This document shows positions 5,317-36,596 of a stretch of DNA of 64,000 nucleotides, piece after piece. The stretch spans positions 248,001-312,000 of the IMG/VR virus record IMGVR_UViG_3300047445_000186. One strand, written 5' to 3'. Both the position numbers and the translations under genes were made by a program. The notes under the pieces were generated by a model. That model did no database searches and was not told the DNA's origin. It worked only from the letters and a program-made list of their open reading frames with translations. The number at the start of each line of letters is the position of its first letter. Positions within the stretch are counted from its first letter, which is position 1.

Positions 5317-5799
5317 TCAGCACTCCTGAGTTTCCTTGTAGTACTCATCCTCGATGAACGCGTGGTAATCGGCGAACGCGTCACCATCGACCTTGCGGTA
5401 CGTGTACCCGTTCAGCTTCCAGCGCTTTATGAACCTGTTGTACAGCTTCGCTCTGCTCGGGCCCTTTGTCTTGTCTGCTTCGAAGAACACGACTGATGGC
5501 TTGAGCATCTTGAGCGCATCCTCAAGGAATTTCTTCGCGGCTGCGAAGATCGCGAGCTGATCACCATCCCCCGTGGCGTCGTACGTTTCGCCATCTTCAT
5601 TGTAGCGATCGTCGTCCTCATCGTCCTCGCCATCGCCTAGTTGGACGAATGTGAAGTTCCATTTGCTGTCGTCCGGCCACCTGTCCATTCGAAATTCAAT
5701 CTCGCGGCCACCGAACTTGGCTCGAGCCCGGTAGGATTTCCCATTGTCTTTTACGACAGTGAGAGTGGTGTTCGTGTTCAGGATTTCGAAGATTTTCAT
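5317..5799 (-). CDS. Late hypothetical protein with MKIFEIL leader
   Basis: Minus strand TAAATA-GGAG-T-ATG directly upstream. Confidence 0.75.
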   Translation of the reverse strand: MKIFEILNTNTTLTVVKDNGKSYRARAKFGGREIEFRMDRWPDDSKWNFTFVQLGDGEDDEDDDRYNEDGETYDATGDGDQLAIFAAAKKFLEDALKMLKPSVVFFEADKTKGPSRAKLYNRFIKRWKLNGYTYRKVDGDAFADYHAFIEDEYYKETQEC

Positions 5800-5892
5800 A
5801 CTCCTATTTACGAGGTGTTCGTCCCGGTCCTGATTCGAGGACTCCAGTGCGGTGTATCTTTCTTACGATACACCCTCATCACTGGAGTTCAA

Positions 5893-7008
5893 ATGTTTCC
5901 CTCGATCGCAAAACTTGACGACTTGCTGCCGTTCGTTCAATCGAACAAGCAGATTCGCGTAAAGCCGTGCGACACGACTGGCCATACGGTCGTGTGCTAC
6001 ATGGTTCAAGACGAAGACACGTTCGACGGGGATCATCATGAATTCGCACGTGAATGCCGTGGTATCTCGTTCGACAAGAACGGCAAGATCAGCGCCCGCA
6101 CGATGCACAAGTTCTTCAACGTTGGCGAGCGTCCTGAAACGCAGCCTGACGTGATCAACTGGCGGGAAGTCACGCGGATCATGGAGAAGCGCGACGGCTC
6201 GATGGTAACACCTGTGTTACTCACCGAGAAGACCTTCAAGTTCAAGACGAAGAAGTCGTTCACGACTCCCGAAGCTGGACTGGCCGACTCGATCTGCCGT
6301 GAAGATCTGAACAAGTACCAGTGGGTGCTCCGGCTCCTGCAAGGCGGGTACACGCCGACTTTCGAGATCACTTCGCCACGGTTCCCGATCGTGGTCCGAT
6401 ACGAGAAGGACGAGCTCACGCTCCTGCATGTTCGCGAGAACGCGACTGGCCGGTACCTGTCGGCTGACGATCTGAAGTGGCTGCTTCCACCGTTCGCGCT
6501 TGTTCTCGATCACTCTGGCGAGTTCAAAGTGGACGGCGTTGTGAGCTGGGACAAGCTGAAGGTTGCGTCTGAAACGGCCGAAGGCATGGAAGGTTGGGTG
6601 ATCCAGTTCCGATCAGGCGAGATGGTGAAGCTGAAGACGAAGTGGTACATCGATTTGCATCACTCCGTGACGTTCACACGTTGGCGCGACATTGCTCGCA
6701 CCGTCTGTGCTGATCAGTCTGACGACTTGAAGGCTGCGTTCGCAATGGTTGGTCGCTCTGTCGAGCCGATCCTCCAGGTAGAGCGGAAGATCAAGTCTCG
6801 GATCGAGACTGTGGAACTGCTGGTGCGAGCATGTGTGCTGCACGCGAAAACGAACGGAATGTCGATCAAAGAAACGGCGCTGCACTTCAAGGAGAACGAG
6901 TTCTTCGGGCTGATCATGCGTTCGTTCCGTGATCAAGAAATCAACTGGGTAGAGTTCTACGAGAAGCACTACCTTGAACGAGACTTTGGATTGGAAGTTG
7001 TAGCATGA
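5893..7008 (+). CDS. rnlA: RNA ligase 1 (T4 Rnl1-like)
   Basis: KFFNVGE, motif I EKRDGS, TFE, EGWV..VKLKT; SD GGAG before ATG 5893. Confidence 0.92.
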   Translation: MFPSIAKLDDLLPFVQSNKQIRVKPCDTTGHTVVCYMVQDEDTFDGDHHEFARECRGISFDKNGKISARTMHKFFNVGERPETQPDVINWREVTRIMEKRDGSMVTPVLLTEKTFKFKTKKSFTTPEAGLADSICREDLNKYQWVLRLLQGGYTPTFEITSPRFPIVVRYEKDELTLLHVRENATGRYLSADDLKWLLPPFALVLDHSGEFKVDGVVSWDKLKVASETAEGMEGWVIQFRSGEMVKLKTKWYIDLHHSVTFTRWRDIARTVCADQSDDLKAAFAMVGRSVEPILQVERKIKSRIETVELLVRACVLHAKTNGMSIKETALHFKENEFFGLIMRSFRDQEINWVEFYEKHYLERDFGLEVVA

Positions 7009-7457
7009 GTTACTTTGATGAAGAGCGGGAGCCGCCAAGTAAGCAGGGTGAGAAGTACCTGCGCCCAATGGGCGTGAATGCTCCGCACTATCCGAACAAG
7101 TTCGAGCGGAAGAAGCTCGTGCAGATTCTGCAGAAGTCTGGAGGAGCCAGCGAAGAAGAGGTTCGCGAGCGCAAGGGTAATCGCCAAGCGCTCGCGCAAG
7201 CCCGCCGCTCTGACTATGGGAACGGGTCGAACAAGTCTCGCCTCGCGCTTCGTCGGGTTCGGAATGAGGTTGCTCAGCGCCTTGGCTTGAACGTGAACGA
7301 TCCGAAAGTCACGGCCGCGACAATGCAGGAGATCTGCGCGCCTTCAGTTCGTGACCGATGGTTCAGGCGGCCAACTGCAGCCTTTCAAGCAGCATGGGCC
7401 GCGCGCGGGCTGAAGGACAAACTGAACACACCAAGTCGTCCGAGGAAAAAGAAATGA
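7005..7457 (+). CDS. Basic hypothetical protein
   Basis: ATGA overlap with rnlA; Arg/Lys rich. Confidence 0.65.
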   Translation: MSYFDEEREPPSKQGEKYLRPMGVNAPHYPNKFERKKLVQILQKSGGASEEEVRERKGNRQALAQARRSDYGNGSNKSRLALRRVRNEVAQRLGLNVNDPKVTAATMQEICAPSVRDRWFRRPTAAFQAAWAARGLKDKLNTPSRPRKKK

Positions 7458-7831
7458 AAAATCCTGAACCCTCTTACCTCGCGTTCGCGGAAGCGATTCG
7501 CGTGCAAATCAAGCAGATCTTCGACGCACCTCCTGACGCGTCGACTTTGCAATGGCAGATCCTTCACCTTGTTGATCAGCTTGCCGATTGCGGTCGAACG
7601 TCGATCCGTCTCGCTGGGCCGAGCATCATGGTCCCTCAAGGTCTTGACCGAGACGGGATCATAAAGTTCATGGACGACATCAGCAAGGCCAGCGAACCTG
7701 CGACGATCACTGACGCGCAGATCGATCAGATCCTGCTCGAGTCCGGGACAACTGGTGAAAAGCAGGTCTGGTTCCAACGGCCAGAAGCTCGGAAAGCTGT
7801 CAAGAAAGCATTCACGCTCGGACAGCAGTGA
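7454..7831 (+). CDS. Hypothetical protein
   Basis: ATGA overlap; followed by terminator. Confidence 0.65.
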   Translation: MKNPEPSYLAFAEAIRVQIKQIFDAPPDASTLQWQILHLVDQLADCGRTSIRLAGPSIMVPQGLDRDGIIKFMDDISKASEPATITDAQIDQILLESGTTGEKQVWFQRPEARKAVKKAFTLGQQ

Positions 7832-7849
7832 GGCTCACCAGAAGCAACC

Positions 7850-7878
7850 GAGGGACCCTAGGGTCCCTCTTTTGTTTA
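7850..7878. terminator. Bidirectional intrinsic terminator, perfect palindrome GAGGGACCCTAGGGTCCCTC
   Basis: Between convergent genes, followed by T-rich run; identical copy at 22562. Confidence 0.8.
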
Positions 7879-7909
7879 GCTATACACCCAGCGCACCGGG
7901 TGTCTCTCG

Positions 7910-8689
7910 TTAAGCTCTACGAACTCCATCCTGACGGACGCCGTCGCTGAAGGAATGACGAGTTGCGGTTGGCTTCGCGTCTGGGCTGTCCAGGTGGCGG
8001 AGCAGTTCAGCAACGAGTGGCGAACGCTGAATGTCGCTGTAGCTGAACTCAACCACGTTGACCATGTTCGTTCGACCAGCGAGCTTACGGCAGATCCACT
8101 CAAGGCCGTTCTCAGTGACACCGCGAAGATCGCACTGCGATGCGTCACCGTTCACAACGAATGTCGAATAGTTACCAGCACGAGTGACGAACAGTTTGAT
8201 CTGATCGATTGTCGTGTTCTGTGCTTCATCAAGAATCACGTACGAGTTGTTGAATGTTCGACCGCGCATGTACGCGAGTGGAGCGAATTCAACCTTGCCA
8301 GTATCAAGCAGCTTCTTGGCCATCGTGACGCCAACCAGTTCTTCCATGGCGTCGAGCAGAGGACGCAGGTAAGGGCTGATCTTTTCTTCGAATGTACCAG
8401 GAAGGAAGCCAAGGTTTTCACCTGCTTCGCAGATTGGACGAGTAAGAACGATCTTCGAAACTTCATTTGCGAGAAGCTTCTCAATCCCGACGGCCATACA
8501 GAGGAATGACTTACCAGATCCAGCAGGACCGGTGCCAATCGTGAGTGGAGCTGTTCTGAGAGACTCAAGATAGAAACCTTGAGCAGCAGTACGAGCTTGT
8601 GGCTGGAATTTCAGACGGATAACCTTTTGGCTTTCTTGGCTAATTGGTTGTGGATACTTCTGACGTGTGGTAGCGAGCTTACGACCCAT
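7910..8689 (-). CDS. phoH: PhoH-like ATPase
   Basis: GPAGSGKS, TRP, GFLPG, PLAYMRGRTF, ILDEAQN, GDASQCD. Confidence 0.95.
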   Translation of the reverse strand: MGRKLATTRQKYPQPISQESQKVIRLKFQPQARTAAQGFYLESLRTAPLTIGTGPAGSGKSFLCMAVGIEKLLANEVSKIVLTRPICEAGENLGFLPGTFEEKISPYLRPLLDAMEELVGVTMAKKLLDTGKVEFAPLAYMRGRTFNNSYVILDEAQNTTIDQIKLFVTRAGNYSTFVVNGDASQCDLRGVTENGLEWICRKLAGRTNMVNVVEFSYSDIQRSPLVAELLRHLDSPDAKPTATRHSFSDGVRQDGVRRA

Positions 8690-8900
8690 TTGATCCTCCT
8701 ACAGGACTGGGTGTGGTTGTGGAACGTCTGCCGATTGGAGACGCACGGTAACGATCAGAGGGGCATGTGAAAACCGCTGCAAAGCACATAAGCACTTGCC
8801 GATAGTAGGATTTGCCCTTGACGTTCTCAAGAACACTGCAGACGTGATGCTGCACTGTAGAGACTGGAAACTTAAGATGCACGTTGCAACTTCGTTGTAT
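8690..8900 (-). ncRNA. Candidate structured 5' leader RNA of phoH
   Basis: Minus-strand TAAATA at 8905-8910; nested inverted repeats closing at the GGAGG SD. Confidence 0.3.
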
Positions 8901-8958
8901 TCGGTATTTAGGCGGCCGGCGCCTATAAGTATCTTTGTAACATCAAATGGAGTACACA

Positions 8959-9174
8959 ATGTCCGGAGTATGGGTTGACGAGAAAGTCGTCGAAATTGCA
9001 CCGCCAGATACTTGGCCATCACTTGGGTTGGATTCGTTGTTCGTTGTAAAGAATCAGCTGCTCGATAAACTCTTCCTGTCGCGCGGTATGCCTGCTTATC
9101 AGGTCCCGTTGAATCGCGCACTTGCACAGGTCGAAGTCTTTATTTCGCAGAAGATGGGCTCTTCCGCTTTTTAG
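8959..9174 (+). CDS. Small hypothetical protein
   Basis: GGAG SD 6 nt before ATG. Confidence 0.6.
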   Translation: MSGVWVDEKVVEIAPPDTWPSLGLDSLFVVKNQLLDKLFLSRGMPAYQVPLNRALAQVEVFISQKMGSSAF

Positions 9175-9799
9175 CTGCTGGTTTTTTAGCTGGAGCTTCG
9201 ATCACAGGTGGCTGATCGAAGTAGTCCACAACCTGGTCAATCAGGCCGAACTTCTTGCATTCTGCCGGAGTGAGATAGCGATCAGATGGCGCGAACAAGA
9301 TATCGCGGATCTGCTTCTCAGTCATGGTAGTGTGATTCAGGAAGTGCCTAATGAAGCGGCGCTCGAGCATCAGATTCGATTCATGCGCTGCGACCAACTC
9401 ATGCATCTTGCCGTACGTCTGGCCGGCGAATTGATGCGCCATCACTTCGGTGTTCTTCGTCATCGTGCGAAGACCCTTGTATCCGGCTGACACGAGAAGA
9501 ACGCCCATCGACATCACAGCACCGATACCGACCGTTGCGATCGGGAGGCGTGATGTCTCCATCAAGTCAATCACTGCGAAACCTTCGGTGCAATCGCCAC
9601 CAACGGAGTTCACGAACATCGTGAGCGGCATGATTTCACCCTGTGAAGTCAGATTCGACTTCAAGATGAAATCACATGCAGCGTGCGATGTATCAACATC
9701 GACTTCGCCGAAGAACATGTGGCAACCCATCGACTCAAGGCTGCTCATGTCGTATCCGAGACCGCCTCCATCAAGAAGGGCTTCAGAGATTTTACGCAT
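9140..9799 (-). CDS. ClpP-like serine protease
   Basis: VNSVGGD, MSMG (Ser), MAHQ (His), DRYLTPAECKKFGLID; SD AGGAG and TAAATA at 9825. Confidence 0.88.
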   Translation of the reverse strand: MRKISEALLDGGGLGYDMSSLESMGCHMFFGEVDVDTSHAACDFILKSNLTSQGEIMPLTMFVNSVGGDCTEGFAVIDLMETSRLPIATVGIGAVMSMGVLLVSAGYKGLRTMTKNTEVMAHQFAGQTYGKMHELVAAHESNLMLERRFIRHFLNHTTMTEKQIRDILFAPSDRYLTPAECKKFGLIDQVVDYFDQPPVIEAPAKKPAAKKRKSPSSAK

Positions 9800-9945
9800 G
9801 ATGAACTCCTGTATCTCGAACAAGTATTTAGAGACCGGCCGGTCCCCTTCGCTGAACTCCGAAATCTGATAAATACCGGTACGCCATCTTTAGATAGCTA
9901 GCAGATGTCGTATTTCTTTCAGCTAGCGGAAACCAGGAGACTTCA

Positions 9946-13401: not shown

Positions 13402-13584
13402 TTGCCGTCTTATGAGTTGGACGGCATGACTACATTGTAACGAGACCTTTTCAAAAACCGTTACTGAATTCGAGTTCAGGTCGGGGAACTCCGAATTAAA
13501 ATCGAGTCATGGGATCAAGATAATGAGACGTAATACAAACGTATTACTTTGGATATAAATTTTCACCTTCCTTGAGGGATCGAA

Positions 13585-13971
13585 ATGGATGTTCTAATTC
13601 GCCGTCGAGAGATAGACACAACCACCCACGTAGTTGAAGTTCATCTGAACGATGAATGGCTTGAATTCGCGAGGGCTACTGCTGAAGAGCCCGATCACCG
13701 CGAAGCTCATCTCTCGCATGCAGAGCGTGAAGCGTTATCTCGAATGGAGGAACTCGTTCAAGGTCCTCCCGTTCCATTCTTTGTAGGCCCAGTCCTCTGC
13801 TGTGCTTATCATCTGTCTCCCACGATGTTGAAGCATGATCTCGACATGCACGGGGCGGATGGGTTCGCCACGCGACACAATCTACTGATCCACGAGTCAG
13901 GCAGAGAGTTCGAAGAACAATTCAAAGCTTGGTACGACGAGCTCTCTGCGGGGACGTATGGCGGCGCGTAA
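13585..13971 (+). CDS. Hypothetical protein
   Basis: GAGGG SD, AT-rich upstream region. Confidence 0.6.
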   Translation: MDVLIRRREIDTTTHVVEVHLNDEWLEFARATAEEPDHREAHLSHAEREALSRMEELVQGPPVPFFVGPVLCCAYHLSPTMLKHDLDMHGADGFATRHNLLIHESGREFEEQFKAWYDELSAGTYGGA

Positions 13972-14179
13972 AGAGCCGCGACCCCCACCCACACCTGAGG
14001 AACTCGTGATCATGAAGATCGAGATTCAAGCGCGTACTGACGCCCTCATGATAGTGGCTACCAGATTGTCTGGTGTGCACACGCTACCAGGCAACGGCCT
14101 GGCCGGCCAATTGATCACCTCGGCCGAGCCACTTGTCAAATTCATCCTCACAGGAGATAAACCTATCGAACGGCACTGA
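13958..14179 (+). CDS. Small hypothetical protein
   Basis: Overlaps previous gene. Confidence 0.55.
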   Translation: MAARKEPRPPPTPEELVIMKIEIQARTDALMIVATRLSGVHTLPGNGLAGQLITSAEPLVKFILTGDKPIERH

Positions 14180-14218
14180 CAGAACTCAACTTTCGAAAAT
14201 CAACATGTTGAAAGGGTA

Positions 14219-14449
14219 TTGATGACAGCGACCCCCGTAGAGCAATTTACTGTGAATTGCACACAAGCACTCGCGATTCGATTCGTAGACACGTTCCACA
14301 CGGGTGACGAGATCGAGAAAGAAGTCGCGAAGACTGAGTTTACGAGACTCACGAAAGCCATGTACGCCGATGGCACCGCTTGCGCAGTTCAATGCAAGGT
14401 GCTCTTGCGTACGATGCAGGACGCGCTGCACGGGAACTGGCCAAGTTGA
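14219..14449 (+). CDS. Small hypothetical protein
   Basis: ORF ending before terminator. Confidence 0.55.
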   Translation: MMTATPVEQFTVNCTQALAIRFVDTFHTGDEIEKEVAKTEFTRLTKAMYADGTACAVQCKVLLRTMQDALHGNWPS

Positions 14450-14469
14450 CTGCTCGTTGTAAGGTGAAC

Positions 14470-14495
14470 GCGGCCGGCGAAAGTCGGCCGCTTCT
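14470..14495 (+). terminator. Hairpin GCGGCCGGC-GAAA-GTCGGCCGC
   Basis: GC stem with GNRA loop after gene. Confidence 0.6.
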
Positions 14496-14615
14496 ATATG
14501 CGAGACACGAAACCGGTGCTCGTTACAATTCTCTGGCAGACCGTTACCGTTTTCTGGTTTTTCTGGCCGCGACCGGGTTATAGTTCACCTATCGCAACGA
14601 GAAACGGAAAAACAA

Positions 14616-15623
14616 ATGTCGAATGTCTGCATCGGTCAATACAACGCTGGCGCTGAACGTTGGGAAGCAATCTACCGCGGTCGCACGATCGCGACGAGCA
14701 AGGACCTGAACGGCGGCCCCGAGTACCTGAAGAAGGTCATCGAAGGCGGCTTCAGCCAGAAGGCCCAAGCGCTCGGCGTCACGAAGATCGAGATCATCGC
14801 AATCGGCGGAAGCGCAGCGAATGAAGATGGTGTCGCCGGCGAGTACATCCCGGCCGCCGACATGCCGAGCGTCGAGAAGGAATTCTCGATCAACGAGCGT
14901 TTCGAGATCATGGAGTCGTACGTCGAGATGGTCGCAGCGCGAGAAATTGCGTCGACGGTCGTGACAGGCGAAGGCGGTCTCGGGAAGTCGTTCACGGTTC
15001 TGCGGACCCTGAAGGCCGCCGGCCTCCAAGACATCTCCCTGATGGAGATCGGTGCTCGACACGCCGGCAAGCAAGGTTTCGTCACGATCAAGGGTTTCAG
15101 CACTCCCAAAGGTCTGTTCCGTACGCTGTACGAGAATCGGAACCAGATCGTGATGTTCGACGACTGCGACCAAGTTCTGCGTGATCCGAACTCGGTGAAC
15201 ATCCTGAAGGCGGCGCTCGACTCGTACGACACTCGCCTCGTCACGTGGAACTCGGAAGGCGGCTTCGGCGGCGAAGATGATCTGCCGAAGACGTTCGAAT
15301 TCACGGGCGGCGTGATCTTCGTCTCGAACATGCCGAAGTCCAAGGTCCCGCAAGCGATTCGCTCGCGAGCCATGAGCGCTGACGTCTCGATGACGCGAGA
15401 TGAAGTCGTCGAACGGATGCGAGTGATCGTGAGCTCTGACGAGTTCATGCCTGACTACGAAATGACGGCGAAGCTCGAGTCGCTCGAGTTCGTCGCTCAA
15501 CATGCTCACAACCCACTGATCACCGAGCTGAACCTCCGGTCGCTCGTGAACGTCGTGAAGACCCGGACGGCCAAGCCCGAAAAGTGGACTCGCATCGGTC
15601 TGTACGCAATGGCGAACTCCTGA
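14616..15623 (+). CDS. AAA+-type P-loop ATPase
   Basis: Walker A GEGGLGKS, Walker B VMFDDCD, NILKAALDS, IFVSN. Confidence 0.85.
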   Translation: MSNVCIGQYNAGAERWEAIYRGRTIATSKDLNGGPEYLKKVIEGGFSQKAQALGVTKIEIIAIGGSAANEDGVAGEYIPAADMPSVEKEFSINERFEIMESYVEMVAAREIASTVVTGEGGLGKSFTVLRTLKAAGLQDISLMEIGARHAGKQGFVTIKGFSTPKGLFRTLYENRNQIVMFDDCDQVLRDPNSVNILKAALDSYDTRLVTWNSEGGFGGEDDLPKTFEFTGGVIFVSNMPKSKVPQAIRSRAMSADVSMTRDEVVERMRVIVSSDEFMPDYEMTAKLESLEFVAQHAHNPLITELNLRSLVNVVKTRTAKPEKWTRIGLYAMANS

Positions 15624-16406: not shown

Positions 16407-16745
16407 ATGCGCTCACGCTGCCATCTGCACTTCAATCAGCTCGAAGCTTTCCGCGAATTCCTCGTCTCTCGAGGCTGGGTCGAGGAACAGGCGAAGGGCC
16501 AGTACGAGAAGCTGCGGATGCGGCACAAGCGCGAGAAGGATCCTCTGATCCTGCACGTTCGTGAAGGCGCGAAGGAGCACTTCACGACTTGGGGTCTGAG
16601 CGAGAAGATGGCGAGCGCCTTCCTCCATCGTCGACAGGAACCGACCTCGGCCGAGATAGCGTCGGTCCTGCATGACGAGCAGTTCCACCTAGCTGCCGCT
16701 GGCGACCACGAGGTGTCGCCGGTTGCACCGAATTTAGAGCGGTAG
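16407..16745 (+). CDS. Hypothetical protein
   Basis: Tiled in operon. Confidence 0.65.
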   Translation: MRSRCHLHFNQLEAFREFLVSRGWVEEQAKGQYEKLRMRHKREKDPLILHVREGAKEHFTTWGLSEKMASAFLHRRQEPTSAEIASVLHDEQFHLAAAGDHEVSPVAPNLER

Positions 16746-16774
16746 CTGGTACTACACCGCTCAAGGAAACGATC

Positions 16775-17218
16775 ATGCGACGTCTGCAGCGACAAGCAGT
16801 AAATAGACCAAACACACGGTCTACTATGTCGCCTACTCAAACCCGAGCGGTTCTAATTCGTCAAGCTGCGTGCGCCGTCCAGGCGCTAGACGCGGATCTG
16901 AACCATCTTCTCGACGCGTACGATTTCTACGTGCAGCGTTTCCCAGATGACAAGGAACTCGCCGATCTGAACGTTTCGATCGACGCTCTCGGCTCGCTTC
17001 CCCTGATCGTTGCGCATCAGCTCACGCACTGGGCGCAGAACGAAAAGTCAGAACTCTCGAGAGATGCTTTCGAGATTGGCGTACTGAACGAATTCTCGCT
17101 CCACATGTTCGCGCTCACGAACTTCATGGAGCGGAAGAACGTTGATGTTCAAGATGTCGTGCCTGAGAAAGTGGCCGACGCTTTCAACGCGCTGAAACTC
17201 ACGAACACAATCCTATGA
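16775..17218 (+). CDS. Hypothetical protein (alternative start 16826 behind late promoter)
   Basis: AAGGA SD at first ATG; TAAATA 16800 plus hairpin before second ATG. Confidence 0.65.
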   Translation: MRRLQRQAVNRPNTRSTMSPTQTRAVLIRQAACAVQALDADLNHLLDAYDFYVQRFPDDKELADLNVSIDALGSLPLIVAHQLTHWAQNEKSELSRDAFEIGVLNEFSLHMFALTNFMERKNVDVQDVVPEKVADAFNALKLTNTIL

Positions 17219-17580
17219 AAGTCACCGAACTGCTTGAGAGCGGCGGTGACCTGCGCGCGAAACTGATCGACAAGATGCGACTCCAGTTCGAGAGGAACGG
17301 GAAGTACATCAATTGTCGCCTTGCTGTGCAGCTCACGGTCGATGTTCCAAAGCTCGAAGAACTGCCGAAAGTGAAGCCGAAAGAGATGATTCTCGGCGAC
17401 ATTCTCGCTTGGGGAATCGCGCACTTCGCGATCTACCTCGGGAACGGCGAAGTTCTCGAAGTCCCAGGCTGGGGCGATCAAGTACAAATCACGCCTTTGA
17501 AGGCCGTTGAAGCGGATTACGACAAGGTCCGCACTGTTTACCGAGTTCCTGCAGATCAACTGCAGAAAGCCCTACAATGA
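17215..17580 (+). CDS. NlpC/P60-like cysteine hydrolase with MKVTELLE leader
   Basis: INCRLAVQ (Cys) then GDILAWG.AHFAIYLGNG (His). Confidence 0.7.
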   Translation: MKVTELLESGGDLRAKLIDKMRLQFERNGKYINCRLAVQLTVDVPKLEELPKVKPKEMILGDILAWGIAHFAIYLGNGEVLEVPGWGDQVQITPLKAVEADYDKVRTVYRVPADQLQKALQ

Positions 17581-18110
17581 AACTACAAGAACTAGCTAGC
17601 GCAGAGCGCTTTAATTCCACCACGCTGCTTGAAAGCGGCAACGCAGCCCTGCGCGCGAAACTCACTGATGATGAGTGCTTAGTTCTTGCGTTATTGATTC
17701 ATGATAAGGGGCACATCATGGCCCGCGGTAATCATGACAGCGATTTAGATAGCGCGATCAGCAAGCTAAAGATGAAGTCTACTATCCCACTTTATCGTGG
17801 CGTGTCTGATAAGGAGTTAGCAGAGATTATCGCTGGTGAAGCTGATCACTATCTCTCCTTCTCAGAAGATCGAAATGTTGCAAAGGGTTTTGGCGCGAAT
17901 GTGATTACGCTAAAGCCTGGGGCTGTGGGTCTCTGTTACTGGAAATGGGGAATCGCAGATAATAAAGCGCTCGCGAAAAAGTATGGCAAGCAATGGGCTG
18001 AGGACCAGGATATTCAGTACATGATCGATTCATTTGAGGAAGAGAAAGAGTGGGTGTTCCCGTTTGAGACACGGTTCACCCAAGTCGGACCTCTAGAGTT
18101 CAAGCAATGA
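17577..18110 (+). CDS. ADP-ribosyltransferase-like protein (R-S-E type) with MKLQEL leader
   Basis: LYRG, YLSFSED, EEEKEW. Confidence 0.75.
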   Translation: MKLQELASAERFNSTTLLESGNAALRAKLTDDECLVLALLIHDKGHIMARGNHDSDLDSAISKLKMKSTIPLYRGVSDKELAEIIAGEADHYLSFSEDRNVAKGFGANVITLKPGAVGLCYWKWGIADNKALAKKYGKQWAEDQDIQYMIDSFEEEKEWVFPFETRFTQVGPLEFKQ

Positions 18111-19363
18111 AACTACAAGAACTAGCTGGTGCAAAGCGCTTTAATTCCACTGAGGGCGGTGGGATCACCGACGCTCTCGATCTTCTTCAAGCCGAATTCG
18201 AAGCTGGCAGAACGTCGCTTCGCATTCTCGGCACTGGCGCGAACGGCGTTGCCCTGACGAATGGCACGAGCGTTTTCAAGTTCTGGCATCGCGATAGCTC
18301 GTACGAGAAGTTCGTGAATTTCTGCCACGAAAACAACAGCCCATTCCTGCCGAAGTTCACGTCAAAGATCAAGAACCTTTCTCCTCGCGTTTTCTATACA
18401 GCGACTGCTGATGAAGACGGCGAGAACATCGTGAAGGGCGTGAAGTACGTGAAGATGGAACTCCTGAAGCCGTACAAGGGCCAAGGCGGTTGCGAGGTCT
18501 GGGCGGACAAGAACATCCAAAAGGCGATCGGTGTTGACGACCCTGAGCTGGATGAGTACGGTGTCGTGAACTTCATGTCGTACGAAGACATCTGGAATTG
18601 CTCAGGTATGTCACGCACTCCTCGCGGCGCATTGATGGAGCTCTTGAGTCATCATGCCTTCCTGAATGATCATCTCGAGTACGAAGAACTGGTTCCATAT
18701 CTCGAGAAGATGAACCGCGAGATCATCGACATGGTCGGTGTTCTCGTGAAGCTTCATACGGTCTTTGGCAAGGAAGATCGACTGGATTTCGGCCCTCGGA
18801 ACATGGCGCTTCGTGGAGACCAAGTCGTGATTCTCGATCCTATCGTGAACGACAATGACATCATCGTGAACAACATGATCATGGACTTGTCGAAGTACCG
18901 GACGCCGCCGAAGATCCAAGAGAGTACCGACACCGATGCCGAGCGTGAAGCTGTCGATGAGTGGATTGAAGCCGCTTATCTTGACGAGCCAGTGATGCGG
19001 AAGTTCCTGATGAAGGGGCTCCCTTCGTTTGGCGAGAAATGCTATCGAGCAGAGTTCGGCTCGAAGGCCAAGAAGTTCAAGGCGCTTCCGATTGGTGAGG
19101 ACGTGGACATGTCATACAAGTCGGCTTCGGCGTCGATGGCTGCGCTCAATAACGGCGTGATCGAGCCGAACGGTGGTGAGCACTGGCTGCTCGAGCTTCG
19201 TATTCCAAGCGGGCTGCGCTGCGGTCGAGACATCAAGCACAGCGATCCCGAGCATCCCGAGAACGTGCAAGAGGAATTCTTGATCGGCCCGGGTGTGAAG
19301 TTCAAGATCATGAAGCAGCTCGCGGATCGAACGATTCTCGTTGCACAGAACTCCATGCACTAA
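18107..19363 (+). CDS. Protein kinase-like domain fused to C-terminal ADP-ribosyltransferase domain
   Basis: LGTGANG, VFK, DFGPRN, ILDP; then CYRA, YKSAS, VQEEFLIGPGVKFKI. Confidence 0.78.
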   Translation: MKLQELAGAKRFNSTEGGGITDALDLLQAEFEAGRTSLRILGTGANGVALTNGTSVFKFWHRDSSYEKFVNFCHENNSPFLPKFTSKIKNLSPRVFYTATADEDGENIVKGVKYVKMELLKPYKGQGGCEVWADKNIQKAIGVDDPELDEYGVVNFMSYEDIWNCSGMSRTPRGALMELLSHHAFLNDHLEYEELVPYLEKMNREIIDMVGVLVKLHTVFGKEDRLDFGPRNMALRGDQVVILDPIVNDNDIIVNNMIMDLSKYRTPPKIQESTDTDAEREAVDEWIEAAYLDEPVMRKFLMKGLPSFGEKCYRAEFGSKAKKFKALPIGEDVDMSYKSASASMAALNNGVIEPNGGEHWLLELRIPSGLRCGRDIKHSDPEHPENVQEEFLIGPGVKFKIMKQLADRTILVAQNSMH

Positions 19364-19389
19364 ATAGAGTTCGAACACGAGAACCGATC

Positions 19390-20679
19390 ATGAAAGTCAA
19401 CGAACTATTTGAAGCCCGTCAGCTCCGTGAAGGATCCTGGTACGACGACTTCCGCCCAGAAGATACCGTCCCGTCCCAAAAAGACAAGGGATGGACGGGT
19501 CGTCATAAGGTGAAGGAAGACGACGGAGAGACGTACGAAGACCTGAAGTATGAAGGTCGAATTCTTCTCCATTACGATGCTCCTATCAAGACGCATGGTC
19601 TTGATCAAGCAGCCGTTAAAGAGGCCTATGAGAAAGCGAAGGCTAAATTCTTGGAAATTCGTGCCGCGCATCCAACGCAGCTTCGCTTTAAGACTTCCGT
19701 TGAAGCCACAAAGTACATGAAGACGATGGAGTACCCTGGTTGGACTCTCGTCGTGCAGTATGCAAGGCTGAACTGGGGATCCGGAGGATACAAGTACGCA
19801 CAAGACCTCGAGTACAAGACGCCTCGCAAGGTTAAGACGCTCGACTTGCCAAAGCAAGAGTTCAAACCAAAACACGCCGAGAACGCGATCAATGCGGAAA
19901 TGGACGGCGATAAGGTCAAGCTCAGCATTGACGTGAAGGTCGGTCCTCTGATGTCTGCATTCATCACGACGGTTTATAACGTCGGCGATAAAATGAAGGC
20001 AAAGATTCTTAACGTTAAGGGCAAGGTCCTTGACTATGATGATCTCTATCGCTCACGCCCACAGAAAGTTTGGGTGACCACTACTGATCTGGATCGTGTG
20101 AAGGCGATCATCGCGAAGAAGCATGCTGACCGCGTTGAGGATGAGAAGGCAGATCACGACAAACTGCAGAACGCTTTGACTGACCGCAAAGAAACCAGCA
20201 AATGGCGAGCTGACGATCAGAAGCAGCGAAAGGCTAAACTCCACGCAACATACGGTAAGGAAATCGTCGATCGTGTGAAGATCAAGTCTATGAGCATGGA
20301 AGGTGATGATGGTTATCAATGGGCTCTGTTCGTTGATGGACGGCGCAAGAAGTCAGGTCTGACTAAGTATCAAGCAGAGGGTGAGCAGCGTATCATGTGG
20401 CGCTGGCTGAAAGAGTACGAGGACATGACTCCTGAGCAGCGGCTGCAGCACGCTCAAGAACTTGAAGGTATTCGCCTGTACTTCATGATGGACGCGATTG
20501 AGAAGTCAGTTGGCGCGCAACTTCCACAGTATCTGAACGCGATCAAGAAGAATGCGAAGGACTTCGTTGATGCGAAGCAGGCAACTAAGGACGCGATCGA
20601 AACTTCGAAGGTCTCTGACGCTCAAGCAAAGAGCATCTTTAATGACCTGATGAAGCGCATGGGCGACAAGCTGGACTGA
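19390..20679 (+). CDS. Late hypothetical protein, probable internal head protein (MKVNELFE leader)
   Basis: TAAATA 19361; highly charged; LFE/LRE sites near N-terminus. Confidence 0.7.
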   Translation: MKVNELFEARQLREGSWYDDFRPEDTVPSQKDKGWTGRHKVKEDDGETYEDLKYEGRILLHYDAPIKTHGLDQAAVKEAYEKAKAKFLEIRAAHPTQLRFKTSVEATKYMKTMEYPGWTLVVQYARLNWGSGGYKYAQDLEYKTPRKVKTLDLPKQEFKPKHAENAINAEMDGDKVKLSIDVKVGPLMSAFITTVYNVGDKMKAKILNVKGKVLDYDDLYRSRPQKVWVTTTDLDRVKAIIAKKHADRVEDEKADHDKLQNALTDRKETSKWRADDQKQRKAKLHATYGKEIVDRVKIKSMSMEGDDGYQWALFVDGRRKKSGLTKYQAEGEQRIMWRWLKEYEDMTPEQRLQHAQELEGIRLYFMMDAIEKSVGAQLPQYLNAIKKNAKDFVDAKQATKDAIETSKVSDAQAKSIFNDLMKRMGDKLD

Positions 20680-20797
20680 TCCCGAAATCCGAGTGCACTC
20701 GGACTCCTCCGTGATTAAATAAGAACTGGTGCTGATGAGGCACCTTTTCTTTTACCTGCGAACAGTGGGTACCTATCACAACCTCGGAGTACGAGAC

Positions 20798-21613
20798 ATG
20801 TCAGACCGCACCACCATCGGTGATCGGATGAAGAGCTACGAAGCGCCTTCAACGACCCGCAAAGCTTTCAAGGGCCAGCCCCTCATTGTCCGCCTGGACG
20901 GAAGCTCATTCCACAAATTCACCAAGGGCATGAAGCGCCCATTCGATCTGGTTCTGAGCCAGCTCATGATCGACACCATGAAGTCCATGGTCGAGCGATA
21001 CAACGCGAACATCGGGTACACGCAATCGGACGAGATCACGCTCGCCTGGTACATGGAGCCATTCGAATCTCGCGAGCTCGAGTTCGGTGGCCGCTTCCAG
21101 AAGTTCGAAAGCGAACTTGCTGCATGGTGTTCTGTGAAGTTCAACTCGCTCCTTCGCGAAACCGAGTACGCCAAGAAGGCAGAGATGCTGCCGTACTTCG
21201 ATGCTCGCGCGTTCGTCGTGCCGAACTTGACCGAAGCGATGCACTGCTTCCTGTGGCGCCAGCAAGATTGCACGAAGAACGCGATCAGCATGGCCGCTCA
21301 GTCGATGTTCTCGCACAAGGAACTGCAAGGGAAACATGGGCCTGAGATGCAGGAGATGATGTTCCAGAAGTTCAACGTGAACTTCAACGACTACCCTTCG
21401 CACTTCAAGCGTGGCACGTTCGCTCGACGCGTGAAGCGCGAGTGGTTCCCGTCCGATGCAGAGATCGAAGCGATTCCGGAGAAATACCGGCCAAGTGGGC
21501 CAATCCTCCGCTCGTTCGTGCAGACCGAAGACATCTGGCTATCGAAGCAACCGAGCGGAACGCAAGCTCTGTTCGGTGACGCACCGATCGTTACAAATGT
21601 TACGGTGTCATGA
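20798..21613 (+). CDS. tRNA(His) guanylyltransferase Thg1-like protein
   Basis: RMKSYE, IVRLDGSSFHKF, YTQSDEITL, FDAR, WRQQDC..NAI. Confidence 0.92.
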   Translation: MSDRTTIGDRMKSYEAPSTTRKAFKGQPLIVRLDGSSFHKFTKGMKRPFDLVLSQLMIDTMKSMVERYNANIGYTQSDEITLAWYMEPFESRELEFGGRFQKFESELAAWCSVKFNSLLRETEYAKKAEMLPYFDARAFVVPNLTEAMHCFLWRQQDCTKNAISMAAQSMFSHKELQGKHGPEMQEMMFQKFNVNFNDYPSHFKRGTFARRVKREWFPSDAEIEAIPEKYRPSGPILRSFVQTEDIWLSKQPSGTQALFGDAPIVTNVTVS

Positions 21614-35711: not shown

Positions 35712-36596
35712 ATGCGTCTCGACGAACTCGCCGGTGTAAAGAAATTCCAGCGACTACAGTGGCATCAAATCACGCGTCTGCTTGATCGGAAATTCGGCAT
35801 CAAATACATTGGTGGCGGAAAGTACGGTCAGGTTTTCACGCACCCGGGCTGGGACTACGTCGTGAAGATCATGGAGCGCGAGGACCCGAACTATCTGGAG
35901 TTCGTTGACTTCGCGCTGAAGCATCCAGACAAGCATTATCCGAAGATCATCAAGAAGCCTTTCATGATGCACGCTTTTCACAAGCGTGAACGCAGCCAGA
36001 AGTACCAACGTCTGACTGTCCTGAAGATCGAGAAGCTTCTCCCGATCGAGAAGAACAAGCTTGACTTCATTGTTCAGAACCTGGATCAATACGCCAGCAT
36101 CGTCACTCGGTACAAGAACAACGAGTACAAGCACGAGAAGAACCAAGAGGCGTACACGCAAAAGCATCCACACCACACGAAGGTCTTGCCTGACGGCACA
36201 AGTGAACAGAACCTGTCGTACAAGGACATCTTCGATCGGTACCCATGGTTCGAGGATCTGTGCTGGGCATTCCGCCGGATCATGGACAACTCGGAGTACG
36301 GGTCGGCCGATATCCATGGTGGGAACTTCATGGAGCGGAAAGACGGCACCGTCGTGATCATCGATCCGCTGTGGGAAGGATACAACTTCGAAGCTGCTGC
36401 ATGGCAGGCCGAGATGGCTGAACGCGGCGACTACTGGGGCGACTACGAAGAGCACATCCCAATGGTCAGCGGCCCCGGGTATGACAGTGCACGCAAGCGT
36501 GAAGAACAAGAAGCGCTCGAGAAGAAGGAAGCCGAAAAGGCGGCCAGGATTGCTGGCGTGTTCGCGCACAATTTCGACGACGATATTCCGTTCTGA
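35712..36596 (+). CDS. Protein kinase-like protein with MRLDELAG leader and SSB-like C-terminal tail
   Basis: IGGGKYG, VVK, DIHGGN, IIDP; ends NFDDDIPF; TAAATA 35683. Confidence 0.8.
   Translation: MRLDELAGVKKFQRLQWHQITRLLDRKFGIKYIGGGKYGQVFTHPGWDYVVKIMEREDPNYLEFVDFALKHPDKHYPKIIKKPFMMHAFHKRERSQKYQRLTVLKIEKLLPIEKNKLDFIVQNLDQYASIVTRYKNNEYKHEKNQEAYTQKHPHHTKVLPDGTSEQNLSYKDIFDRYPWFEDLCWAFRRIMDNSEYGSADIHGGNFMERKDGTVVIIDPLWEGYNFEAAAWQAEMAERGDYWGDYEEHIPMVSGPGYDSARKREEQEALEKKEAEKAARIAGVFAHNFDDDIPF

Follow-up and report, generated by a model that had tools for sequence, protein, structure and literature searches.

In bacteriophage T4, the internal proteins (IPs), Alt and further proteins of the core reach the prohead by means of propeptides of 10-19 residues, which the gp21 protease removes by cutting after Glu. 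The first 10 residues of IPIII suffice for its targeting. The IPs of the T-even phages form a diverse set with only this capsid-targeting sequence (CTS) in common, and evolution may use the CTS as a means of bringing various proteins into the capsid (PMC9026906, PMC5694885, PMC3012670, PMC12373910). For T-even internal proteins and their CTS, Mullaney and Black (1996) and Repoila et al. (1994) are cited here through PMC9026906, PMC3012670, PMC12373910 and PMC2839356. The present study concerns four adjacent genes, at positions 17215-20679 of a stretch of 64,000 nucleotides, hereafter the window, which corresponds to bases 248,001-312,000 of the virus record IMGVR_UViG_3300047445_000186 (331,776 bp, GC 54%). 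Each of the four genes begins with a short leader, and we consider it probable that together they are a cassette of leader-tagged proteins, packaged into a T4-like head and ejected with the DNA.

Like IPI, IPII and IPIII of T4, these proteins carry a short leader of the type MK..(Q/K)E(F/L) on otherwise unrelated and poorly conserved bodies, x-E followed by a small residue marks the end of the leader, and a gp21-family protease is encoded in the genome. Neighbouring leaders are also nearly identical in DNA, with 43 of 46 nucleotides shared here, while in the fetched T4 sequences the first 32 nucleotides of ipII and ipIII, coding for MKTYQEFIAE, are identical and ipI begins MKTFKEF. In both cases the loci vary between strains. 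The variable IP loci of T-even phages were reportedly first described by Repoila et al. in 1994. Unlike the T4 IPs, the genes studied here belong to another clade, that of 332-kb jumbo phages with RsoM2USA, Xoo-sp13 and XacN1 as relatives, and the tagged genes are many more (about 19) and scattered over several clusters. Their cargo includes enzymes, namely ADP-ribosyltransferases (ARTs) and kinase-like proteins, whereas the T4 IPs are small basic anti-restriction proteins. The genes abut by ATGA overlaps in place of the promoter/stem-loop elements reported for T-even IP loci, one leader is a mosaic of two units, and packaging is a prediction.

Other described systems share part of this design. 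The second gene of the locus codes for an ART of 177 residues, ART177, which recalls T4 Alt in that an ART with an N-terminal propeptide occurs in a phage that also encodes a gp21-type protease (PMC5694885, PMC9026906) and in that it matches a PHROG named after RNA polymerase ADP-ribosylation. By analogy this small ART would be a functional counterpart of T4 Alt; in contrast to Alt it has just 177 residues, and the annotated proteins closest to it come from Erwinia Snuvirus and Ackermannviridae phages. In phiKZ, 201phi2-1 and SPN3US, many head-internal proteins are cut after Glu by a gp21-related protease, and the SPN3US paralogues gp53 and gp54 are identical over their N-terminal 15 residues and diverged in their bodies (PMC5694885). 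The phiKZ-like propeptides are, however, mostly longer than 100 residues, and cleavage there follows the motif A/S/G-x-E, whereas the leaders described here comprise 8-20 residues and occur with a T4-like capsid protein. Fusions of MuF/SPP1-gp7 with ARTs, which are structural neighbours of the C-terminal domain of the third protein of the locus (p418), likewise join a constant head-incorporation module to ADPrib_exo_Tox cargo; in those fusions an entire domain of ~300 residues stays constant, here a peptide of 10-20 residues predicted to be cleavable. Our literature search turned up no account of such leaders in the RsoM2USA/XacN1 clade, and cassettes of CTS-tagged internal proteins have to our knowledge not been described in these jumbo phages, the principle being known from T4.

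The mosaic leader of the ART177 gene

The locus consists of four co-oriented and closely spaced open reading frames (ORFs), p121, ART177, p418 and p429, the first three of which are joined through ATGA start/stop overlaps. Nothing in the analysis called for another genetic code. Its features are as follows.

17215-17580, plus strand: p121, with the leader MKVTELLE, then SGGDLRAKL, then a small putative NlpC/P60-like body; its ATGA start overlaps the upstream stop.
17230-17265, plus strand: leader-B segment of p121 (codons 6-17, LLESGGDLRAKL), from sequence reading and the codon-identity test.
17575-17620, plus strand: copy 1 of a 46-nt repeat, CA followed by the ATG, ART codons 1-15 (leader A'), from the repeat finder.
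17577-18110, plus strand: ART177, a two-unit leader and an ADP-ribosyltransferase of the R-S-E class, GC-poor (phrog_832, alignment, AlphaFold, Foldseek).
17625-17666, plus strand: leader-B' segment of the ART (codons 17-30, LLESGNAALRAKL), from sequence reading and the codon-identity test.
18105-18150, plus strand: second copy of that 46-nt repeat, at the beginning of p418 (leader A, native to the kinase-like family), from the repeat finder.
18107-19363, plus strand: p418, with leader A, a kinase-like domain (~20-262) and a C-terminal ART domain (~285-418), from homologues, Foldseek and Atlas.
19390-20679, plus strand: p429, an ORFan of 429 aa with the leader MKVNELFE-A...LRE-G, from the ORF list.
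17536-20442, no strand: block ~6% divergent between two haplotypes, from the haplotype comparison.

An initial annotation of this DNA had reported that 17577-17620 and 18107-18150 match at 41 of 44 nucleotides. Counted from the ATG we obtained exactly this figure, and the repeat finder gave 43 of 46 with 2 extra nucleotides (17575-17620 and 18105-18150). The identity begins 2 nt 5' of each ATG and continues in frame as far as codon 15, the peptide encoded being MKLQELA-S/G-A-E/K-RFNST. Among 171 pairs of leader-type gene starts in the genome, that of ART177 and p418 is the sole outlier (41/45, the next pair reaching 31/45 and the median being 18/45). Where residues of leader A are conserved, the same codon is used at 11 of 12 degenerate positions, whereas 5.0 would be expected from genome codon usage (P = 2e-4).

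The initial annotation had further pointed out that the ART protein mirrors p121 behind leader A, which proved to extend to the DNA. ART codons 17-30 and p121 codons 6-17 share two blocks (14/15 and 14/14 nt), separated by a spacer of 9 nt in ART177 and 6 nt in p121, so that the peptides read LLESG...LRAKL and LLESG..LRAKL, respectively. At this leader B, 8 of 10 positions have the same codon, compared with 3.5 expected (P = 3.5e-3). As a control, two old paralogues that share a leader motif at the peptide level had no excess (3 of 7 codons the same, 3.3 expected). Because codon identity at both leaders is above expectation, the likeness of the DNA exceeds what selection on the peptide accounts for and marks recent shared ancestry of the segments. 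Chance as the source of the leader likeness is excluded. The GC content at third codon positions (GC3) of the two leader segments (7/16 and 9/14 by hand count) was set aside, the codons being too few.

The ART body had also been described as more AT-rich, and the composition profile agrees. The GC and GC3 of the ART177 gene are 0.476 and 0.506 (0.464 and 0.500 for the body alone), compared with means of 0.548 ± 0.032 and 0.667 ± 0.080 over the genes of the genome (450 heuristic gene calls). The gene lies within the lowest 1% of these calls for both measures; the values of p121 and p418 are unremarkable.

The p121 protein is identical on nine contigs, which come from several samples and agree in their gene order. 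Two contigs (L014 and L015) are 100% identical to the window, and three (L016, L017 and L004) represent a second haplotype. The flanks of the two haplotypes are 99.5-100% identical, with 1 mismatch in the 919 nt of the left flank (16607-17525), and a Thg1-like gene is 99.6% identical. A divergent block of ~2.9 kb covers ART177, p418 and p429, with about 6% divergence from 17622 to ~20442. Its left edge lies within 17536-17621, that is, in the 3' end of p121 and leader A of the ART. The dS between haplotypes is 0.23 in ART177, 0.33 in p418 and 0.125 in p429, versus 0.024 in p121. The dN/dS ratios of ART177, p418 and p429 are 0.08-0.14 (0.13 in p429), and such low values argue that the three genes are functional and under purifying selection. 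Positive selection as the cause of the block was rejected, given these ratios together with the high dS, and the pattern indicates that the ART-p418-p429 block was replaced homologously by a more distant allele and did not arise by fast adaptive change.

In the second haplotype (L016, L017 and L004) a 1-nt deletion just 5' of the p418 ATG shifts the ART stop. The resulting ART has 188 aa, overlaps the p418 leader by ~38 nt and stops at a TAA within that leader, and the p418 ATG is retained. In L004 the second codon of p418 is also altered, from AAA to ACA.

The initial annotation had proposed to look for cargo swapped behind constant leaders in other strains, and had named a locus invariant in relatives as the outcome that would refute its reading. 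Among the nine contigs we found neither swapped cargo nor a pre-insertion state, and in these close relatives the gene order is invariant, which is the refuting outcome that had been named. The event therefore predates the split of the two sampled haplotypes. The word "recent" can be kept in a relative sense only, since the leader-A copies differ by 7%, which is similar to the divergence between haplotypes.

Products of the four genes

ART177 matches phrog_832 ('RNA polymerase ADP-ribosylase') at 2.6e-7. Its score against Pfam ADPrib_exo_Tox (15.7 bits) is below the gathering cut-off of 23.4, and its class membership therefore rests on motifs, fold and phrog_832. The catalytic residues R74, S94-x-S96-E97 and E156-x-E158 are at least 90% conserved in an alignment of 40 sequences. 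The AlphaFold model has a pLDDT of 90, residues 1-13 being disordered, and the top Foldseek matches are all R-S-E ARTs (ExoS, C3, Plx2A and Tre1; probability 0.97-1.0, TM about 0.5). By tblastn, the protein matched Erwinia Snuvirus phages at 1e-11 to 1e-14 and Ackermannviridae more weakly, and gave no match in T4 at E <= 0.01.

In nearly all of 99 relatives of ART177 obtained with HMMER, homology starts at about residue 26-29. Among 73 short ART relatives, the prefix before a conserved HDK motif varies from about 5 to 50 residues; 7-17 of them have an MKLxDLxxE-type leader of their own, and some, including the Erwinia Snuvirus homologue, are leaderless. These varied prefixes place the same cargo behind different leaders in different phages. 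To this extent the proposed recruitment of cargo at leaders stands, the same ART core being found elsewhere behind other leaders or none; the swapping of cargo at the locus itself was not found in the nine contigs. The nearest ART relatives, P0030 and P0033, are on short contigs. The second-closest relative of the ART core, P0029, is a protein of 2476 aa with the domain at residues 813-955 (56% identity), so that the ART core also serves as a module in giant multidomain proteins.

The 25 homologues of p418 (239-284 aa, 34-54% identity) cover just its N-terminal ~62%. Throughout the leader region p418 is colinear with this kinase-like family, and the 26 sequences have a consensus that opens with MKLxELxGxKxL, where E5, L6, G8 and K10 reach 90% or more. 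Residues G42, G44, D227, N232 and D244, candidates for a Gly-rich loop, a catalytic D-x4-N and a metal-binding Asp, are invariant or at least 90% conserved in the same sequences. The N-terminal domain has a confident model and no Pfam match; Foldseek relates it to APH(2'') and MEK1 (E about 1e-4, probability 0.96-1.0), with a TM of just 0.2-0.27. The C-terminal domain resembles ADPrib_exo_Tox clusters of the Atlas (features 0.96, TM by query 0.71-0.79) and contains the motifs YRA, S-x-S (SASAS) and Q-E-E. It has no sequence match in the PDB and no Pfam match, and our own model is of low confidence there. The sole sequence relative of this part is P0028, the N-terminal part of which differs and carries a DGRHR motif. 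Since the 25 kinase-like homologues lack the C-terminal ART, p418 itself is, judged by sequence, a fusion that joins a second ART to a kinase-like protein with a leader, and we found it in this lineage only.

At least four kinase-like paralogues are present in the genome, three of them with CTS-like starts. They include 110406-111086 and 166097-166720 of G000 (the prefix used for genome positions), the latter matching the PHROG of T7 gp0.7-type protein kinases at 2.9e-7, and one gene in the window:

35712-36596, plus strand: in-genome paralogue of the p418 kinase-like domain, leader type MRLDELAGVKKF, from sequence comparison.

The leader of this last gene is of the same type as that of p418 and has no DNA-level identity to it.

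The protein p121 aligns with Pfam NLPC_P60 at E 0.0012 and 19.3 bits, below the cut-off of 23 and over the His-containing half only, and with phrog_329 at 8.3e-5. It is thus weakly NlpC/P60-like in sequence, which we treat as a lead. A word-based search returned no homologue besides p121 itself. For p429 there was no Pfam, PHROG, phage or usable Atlas match, and neither p418 nor p429 had a tblastn match among 50,697 phage records.

Leader-type genes, head module and surroundings of the locus

The starts of 456 genes were scanned for the motif M-[KQR]-[LIVM]-x(1-2)-E-[LFIMY], which begins 19 of them, compared with 0.6 expected from N-terminal composition and an internal-Met rate of 0.24%, an enrichment of about 30-fold. 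The leader genes are clustered, at 108.5-116 kb and 164-178 kb of G000 and at 17215-20679 of the window. The bodies behind the leaders belong to differing families or are ORFans; outside the cassette most are ORFans, one being kinase-like. E-[ASG] occurs at residues 6-21 in 12 of the 19 leader genes versus 95 of the 437 others (odds ratio 6.2, P = 2e-4). At the sequence level, the predicted cleavage sites are LLE/S in p121 and the ART, STE/G in p418, and LFE/A and LRE/G in p429. Just five proteins have LLE-[SGAT] in their first 25 residues, namely p121, ART177, the capsid protein, a 277-aa protein of the head module and one unrelated protein.

The head module runs from the portal through the protease, the 277-aa protein and a coiled-coil scaffold to the capsid protein. 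The prohead protease (G000 5943-6353) belongs to the T4 gp21 family (Peptidase_S77, PF03420; 93.5 bits, cut-off 27). Both the protease and the protease-adjacent 277-aa protein begin with the leader motif; outside the window, at G000 5877-9856, their N-termini read MQLLKEYL and MKLLQEMLGLLE-A, respectively. The capsid protein is 51% identical to its homologue in the Ralstonia jumbo phage RsoM2USA and 45-53% identical to those of Xoo-sp13, Stenotrophomonas CM1/RAS14 and XacN1; more distant matches are T4 gp23-type proteins, in >2,500 phage records. Two candidate maturation sites lie in the capsid protein, ALLE-G (residues 12-16) and HLLE-T (at about residue 39), of which the first, as ALLEGL, is kept in RsoM2USA. 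In related jumbo phages, clusters of leader-type genes stand beside a kinase-like gene in differing contexts, which fits a plastic leader-cluster region.

Two further features of the window were recorded:

20728-20744, plus strand: terminator-like hairpin and T-run directly 3' of p429, from the hairpin scan.
5317-5799, minus strand: further leader-type gene, MKIFEIL..., 160 aa, from the motif scan.

A gene for an AAA-like protein (14616-15623; PHROG 1250, 1.9e-49) is the first of the same-strand run that ends with p429, and a strong terminator-like hairpin lies just upstream of it (14470-14491). This hairpin and that at 20728-20744 may be the bounds of one transcription unit, although hairpin counts are not above the shuffled expectation. 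Directly 3' of the cassette, 20729-21613 codes for a Thg1-like tRNA-His guanylyltransferase (PF04446, 1.6e-27; phrog_4717, 4.6e-71). In a blastn search of the locus against phages, the sole match was a short piece of this gene, and a search for related loci with the upstream AAA-like protein found no relative. A stretch of ~1.2 kb (13402-14615) has no confident gene call in the heuristic gene set, and the window as a whole yielded no tRNA.

Origin and role of the leaders

Because 25 distant homologues and the in-genome paralogue keep MKLxELxGxKx(L/F), leader A is native to the kinase-like family, and ART codons 1-15 were accordingly copied from a p418-type gene. For leader B the direction is less clear. 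The pattern LLE-S, 5-8 residues, KL-[ST]-D-D-E recurs among the ART relatives, and ART177 has the spacing typical of the family. Since this pattern is common in ARTs and p121 has no homologues, p121 may be the recipient and not the donor, and leader B, to judge from these sequences, may be the ART family's own. The initial annotation had seen the ART N-terminus as a chimera of both neighbours; the mosaic in the DNA and the p418-type origin of its first segment agree with this, and the second segment need not derive from p121. The ART leader looks like two tandem CTS-like units, a p418-type unit having been added before an older one. A degenerate leader-A DNA pattern had no match in viral contigs, nor had a near-exact one in metagenome contigs, in searches from which records near the window's own may be excluded.

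In the mechanism that we propose, the leader would dock each cassette protein onto the scaffolding core of the prohead, and the gp21-type protease would cut it off after Glu (LLE/S, LFE/A, STE/G). The mature proteins, that is, the NlpC/P60-like protein, the ART, the kinase-like/ART fusion and p429, would remain in the head and pass into the host along with the DNA, and the ejected enzymes would modify host proteins early, as does T4 Alt. As a short leader would be the sole shared requirement, its coding DNA could act as a patch of homology between otherwise unrelated genes, allowing cargo to be captured or exchanged. The 5' 90 nt of the ART gene would then combine codons 1-15 from a p418-type leader with codons 17-30 that share recent DNA ancestry with the p121 leader, in front of a GC-poor body of presumably foreign origin.

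Several observations weigh against this proposal. The right edge of the divergent block, at about 20442-20607, lies inside p429 and not at a leader, so that the position of the left edge at a leader is no more than suggestive. Relatives with another cargo behind leader A at this place, or with p121 and p418 and no ART between them, were not found. An obvious E-[ASG] site is missing in 7 of the 19 motif genes, some of which may carry the motif by chance or for another role. The leader is kept across the kinase-like family at 35-54% identity, and the N-terminus could simply serve the function of that protein. With regard to the timing of expression, the T4 late-promoter motif TATAAATA is absent from the whole genome, and the T4 late promoter was dropped as a candidate expression signal. 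Finally, we infer the capsid-targeting role of the leaders from the analogy with T4 and the presence of the protease, and packaging, cleavage after Glu, ejection and the targets of the enzymes are likewise predictions.

The same data can be read in other ways. If ART177 were a long-standing resident with its own CTS-type leader, short-patch gene conversion could have homogenised adjacent leaders, and their likeness would be uninformative on the arrival of the ART. Such concerted evolution would suit the many ART relatives that have their own MKLxDLxxE-type leader, the frequency of LLE-S...KL-[ST]DDE in the family, the invariant gene order in the nine contigs and the limitation of identity to two short patches. 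However, the leader-A copies diverge independently in both haplotypes without ongoing homogenisation, the two tandem CTS-like units look like an addition and not a conversion, and the ART body is compositionally foreign. We regard this explanation as rather unlikely, and it overlaps with the cassette proposal in that both invoke recombination at leaders. Greater doubt attaches to a role outside the capsid, in which the MK-hydrophobic-x-E-L start would be a feature of translation initiation or of the mRNA, or a tag for another destination (degradation control, the membrane, or partner binding in the infected cell). The codons of leader A mostly end in A or T and three of the four genes have their starts within ATGA overlaps, as such a role might predict. 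Yet it is the peptide and not the DNA that is kept across the 25 distant kinase-like homologues (E5, L6, G8 and K10 at 90% or more), the old paralogue has no codon identity, and the leader lacks the hydrophobic core typical of a secretion signal. Moreover, the motif is similar to the T4 CTS, occurs in a genome that also encodes a gp21-type protease, and is found on the protease itself, on the protease-adjacent protein and near the conserved LLE-G site of the capsid protein. A role of this kind therefore seems improbable to us.

That p121, ART177 and p418 lie side by side on one strand and have N-terminal motifs in common might also suggest old tandem paralogues, the bodies of which diverged beyond recognition while the N-termini were conserved. 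Their body folds differ, though (NlpC/P60-like; R-S-E ART; kinase-like with ART), synonymous-site identity in the leaders is far above the level of old paralogy, and ART relatives elsewhere have no p418-type leader, which makes this origin very hard to credit. A chimeric join at the 46-nt repeat has to be considered as well, since repeats can mislead assemblers. The arrangement, however, recurs in two haplotypes and on nine contigs, which were assembled independently and come from several samples, and the reading frames are all intact and under purifying selection; we give an assembly artefact practically no weight.

With the cassette proposal as a starting point, we tentatively extend it to the jumbo phages related to RsoM2USA and XacN1. 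In these phages, a leader of 8-20 residues may be a general address for ~20 unrelated capsid-loaded proteins, among them two ARTs, several kinase-like enzymes and one peptidase-like protein, and new effectors may have been captured by recombination at leader DNA. If this extension is true, the mosaic leader of the ART and the block replacement that starts there would be direct footprints of capture.

As the principle is already known from T4, the finding is confirmatory and not surprising. The locus provides a footprint of leader recombination at the DNA level and extends to another lineage the idea, proposed for T-even phages, that cargo could be assembled in this way. If the leaders are capsid-targeting signals, a simple N-terminal motif would pick out the repertoire of ejected proteins in a large and almost unstudied clade of jumbo phages. 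Proteins that arrive first are candidates for host take-over and anti-defence, and they would here include enzymes, not only small inhibitors. A short portable packaging tag outside T4 would also be useful for phage engineering.

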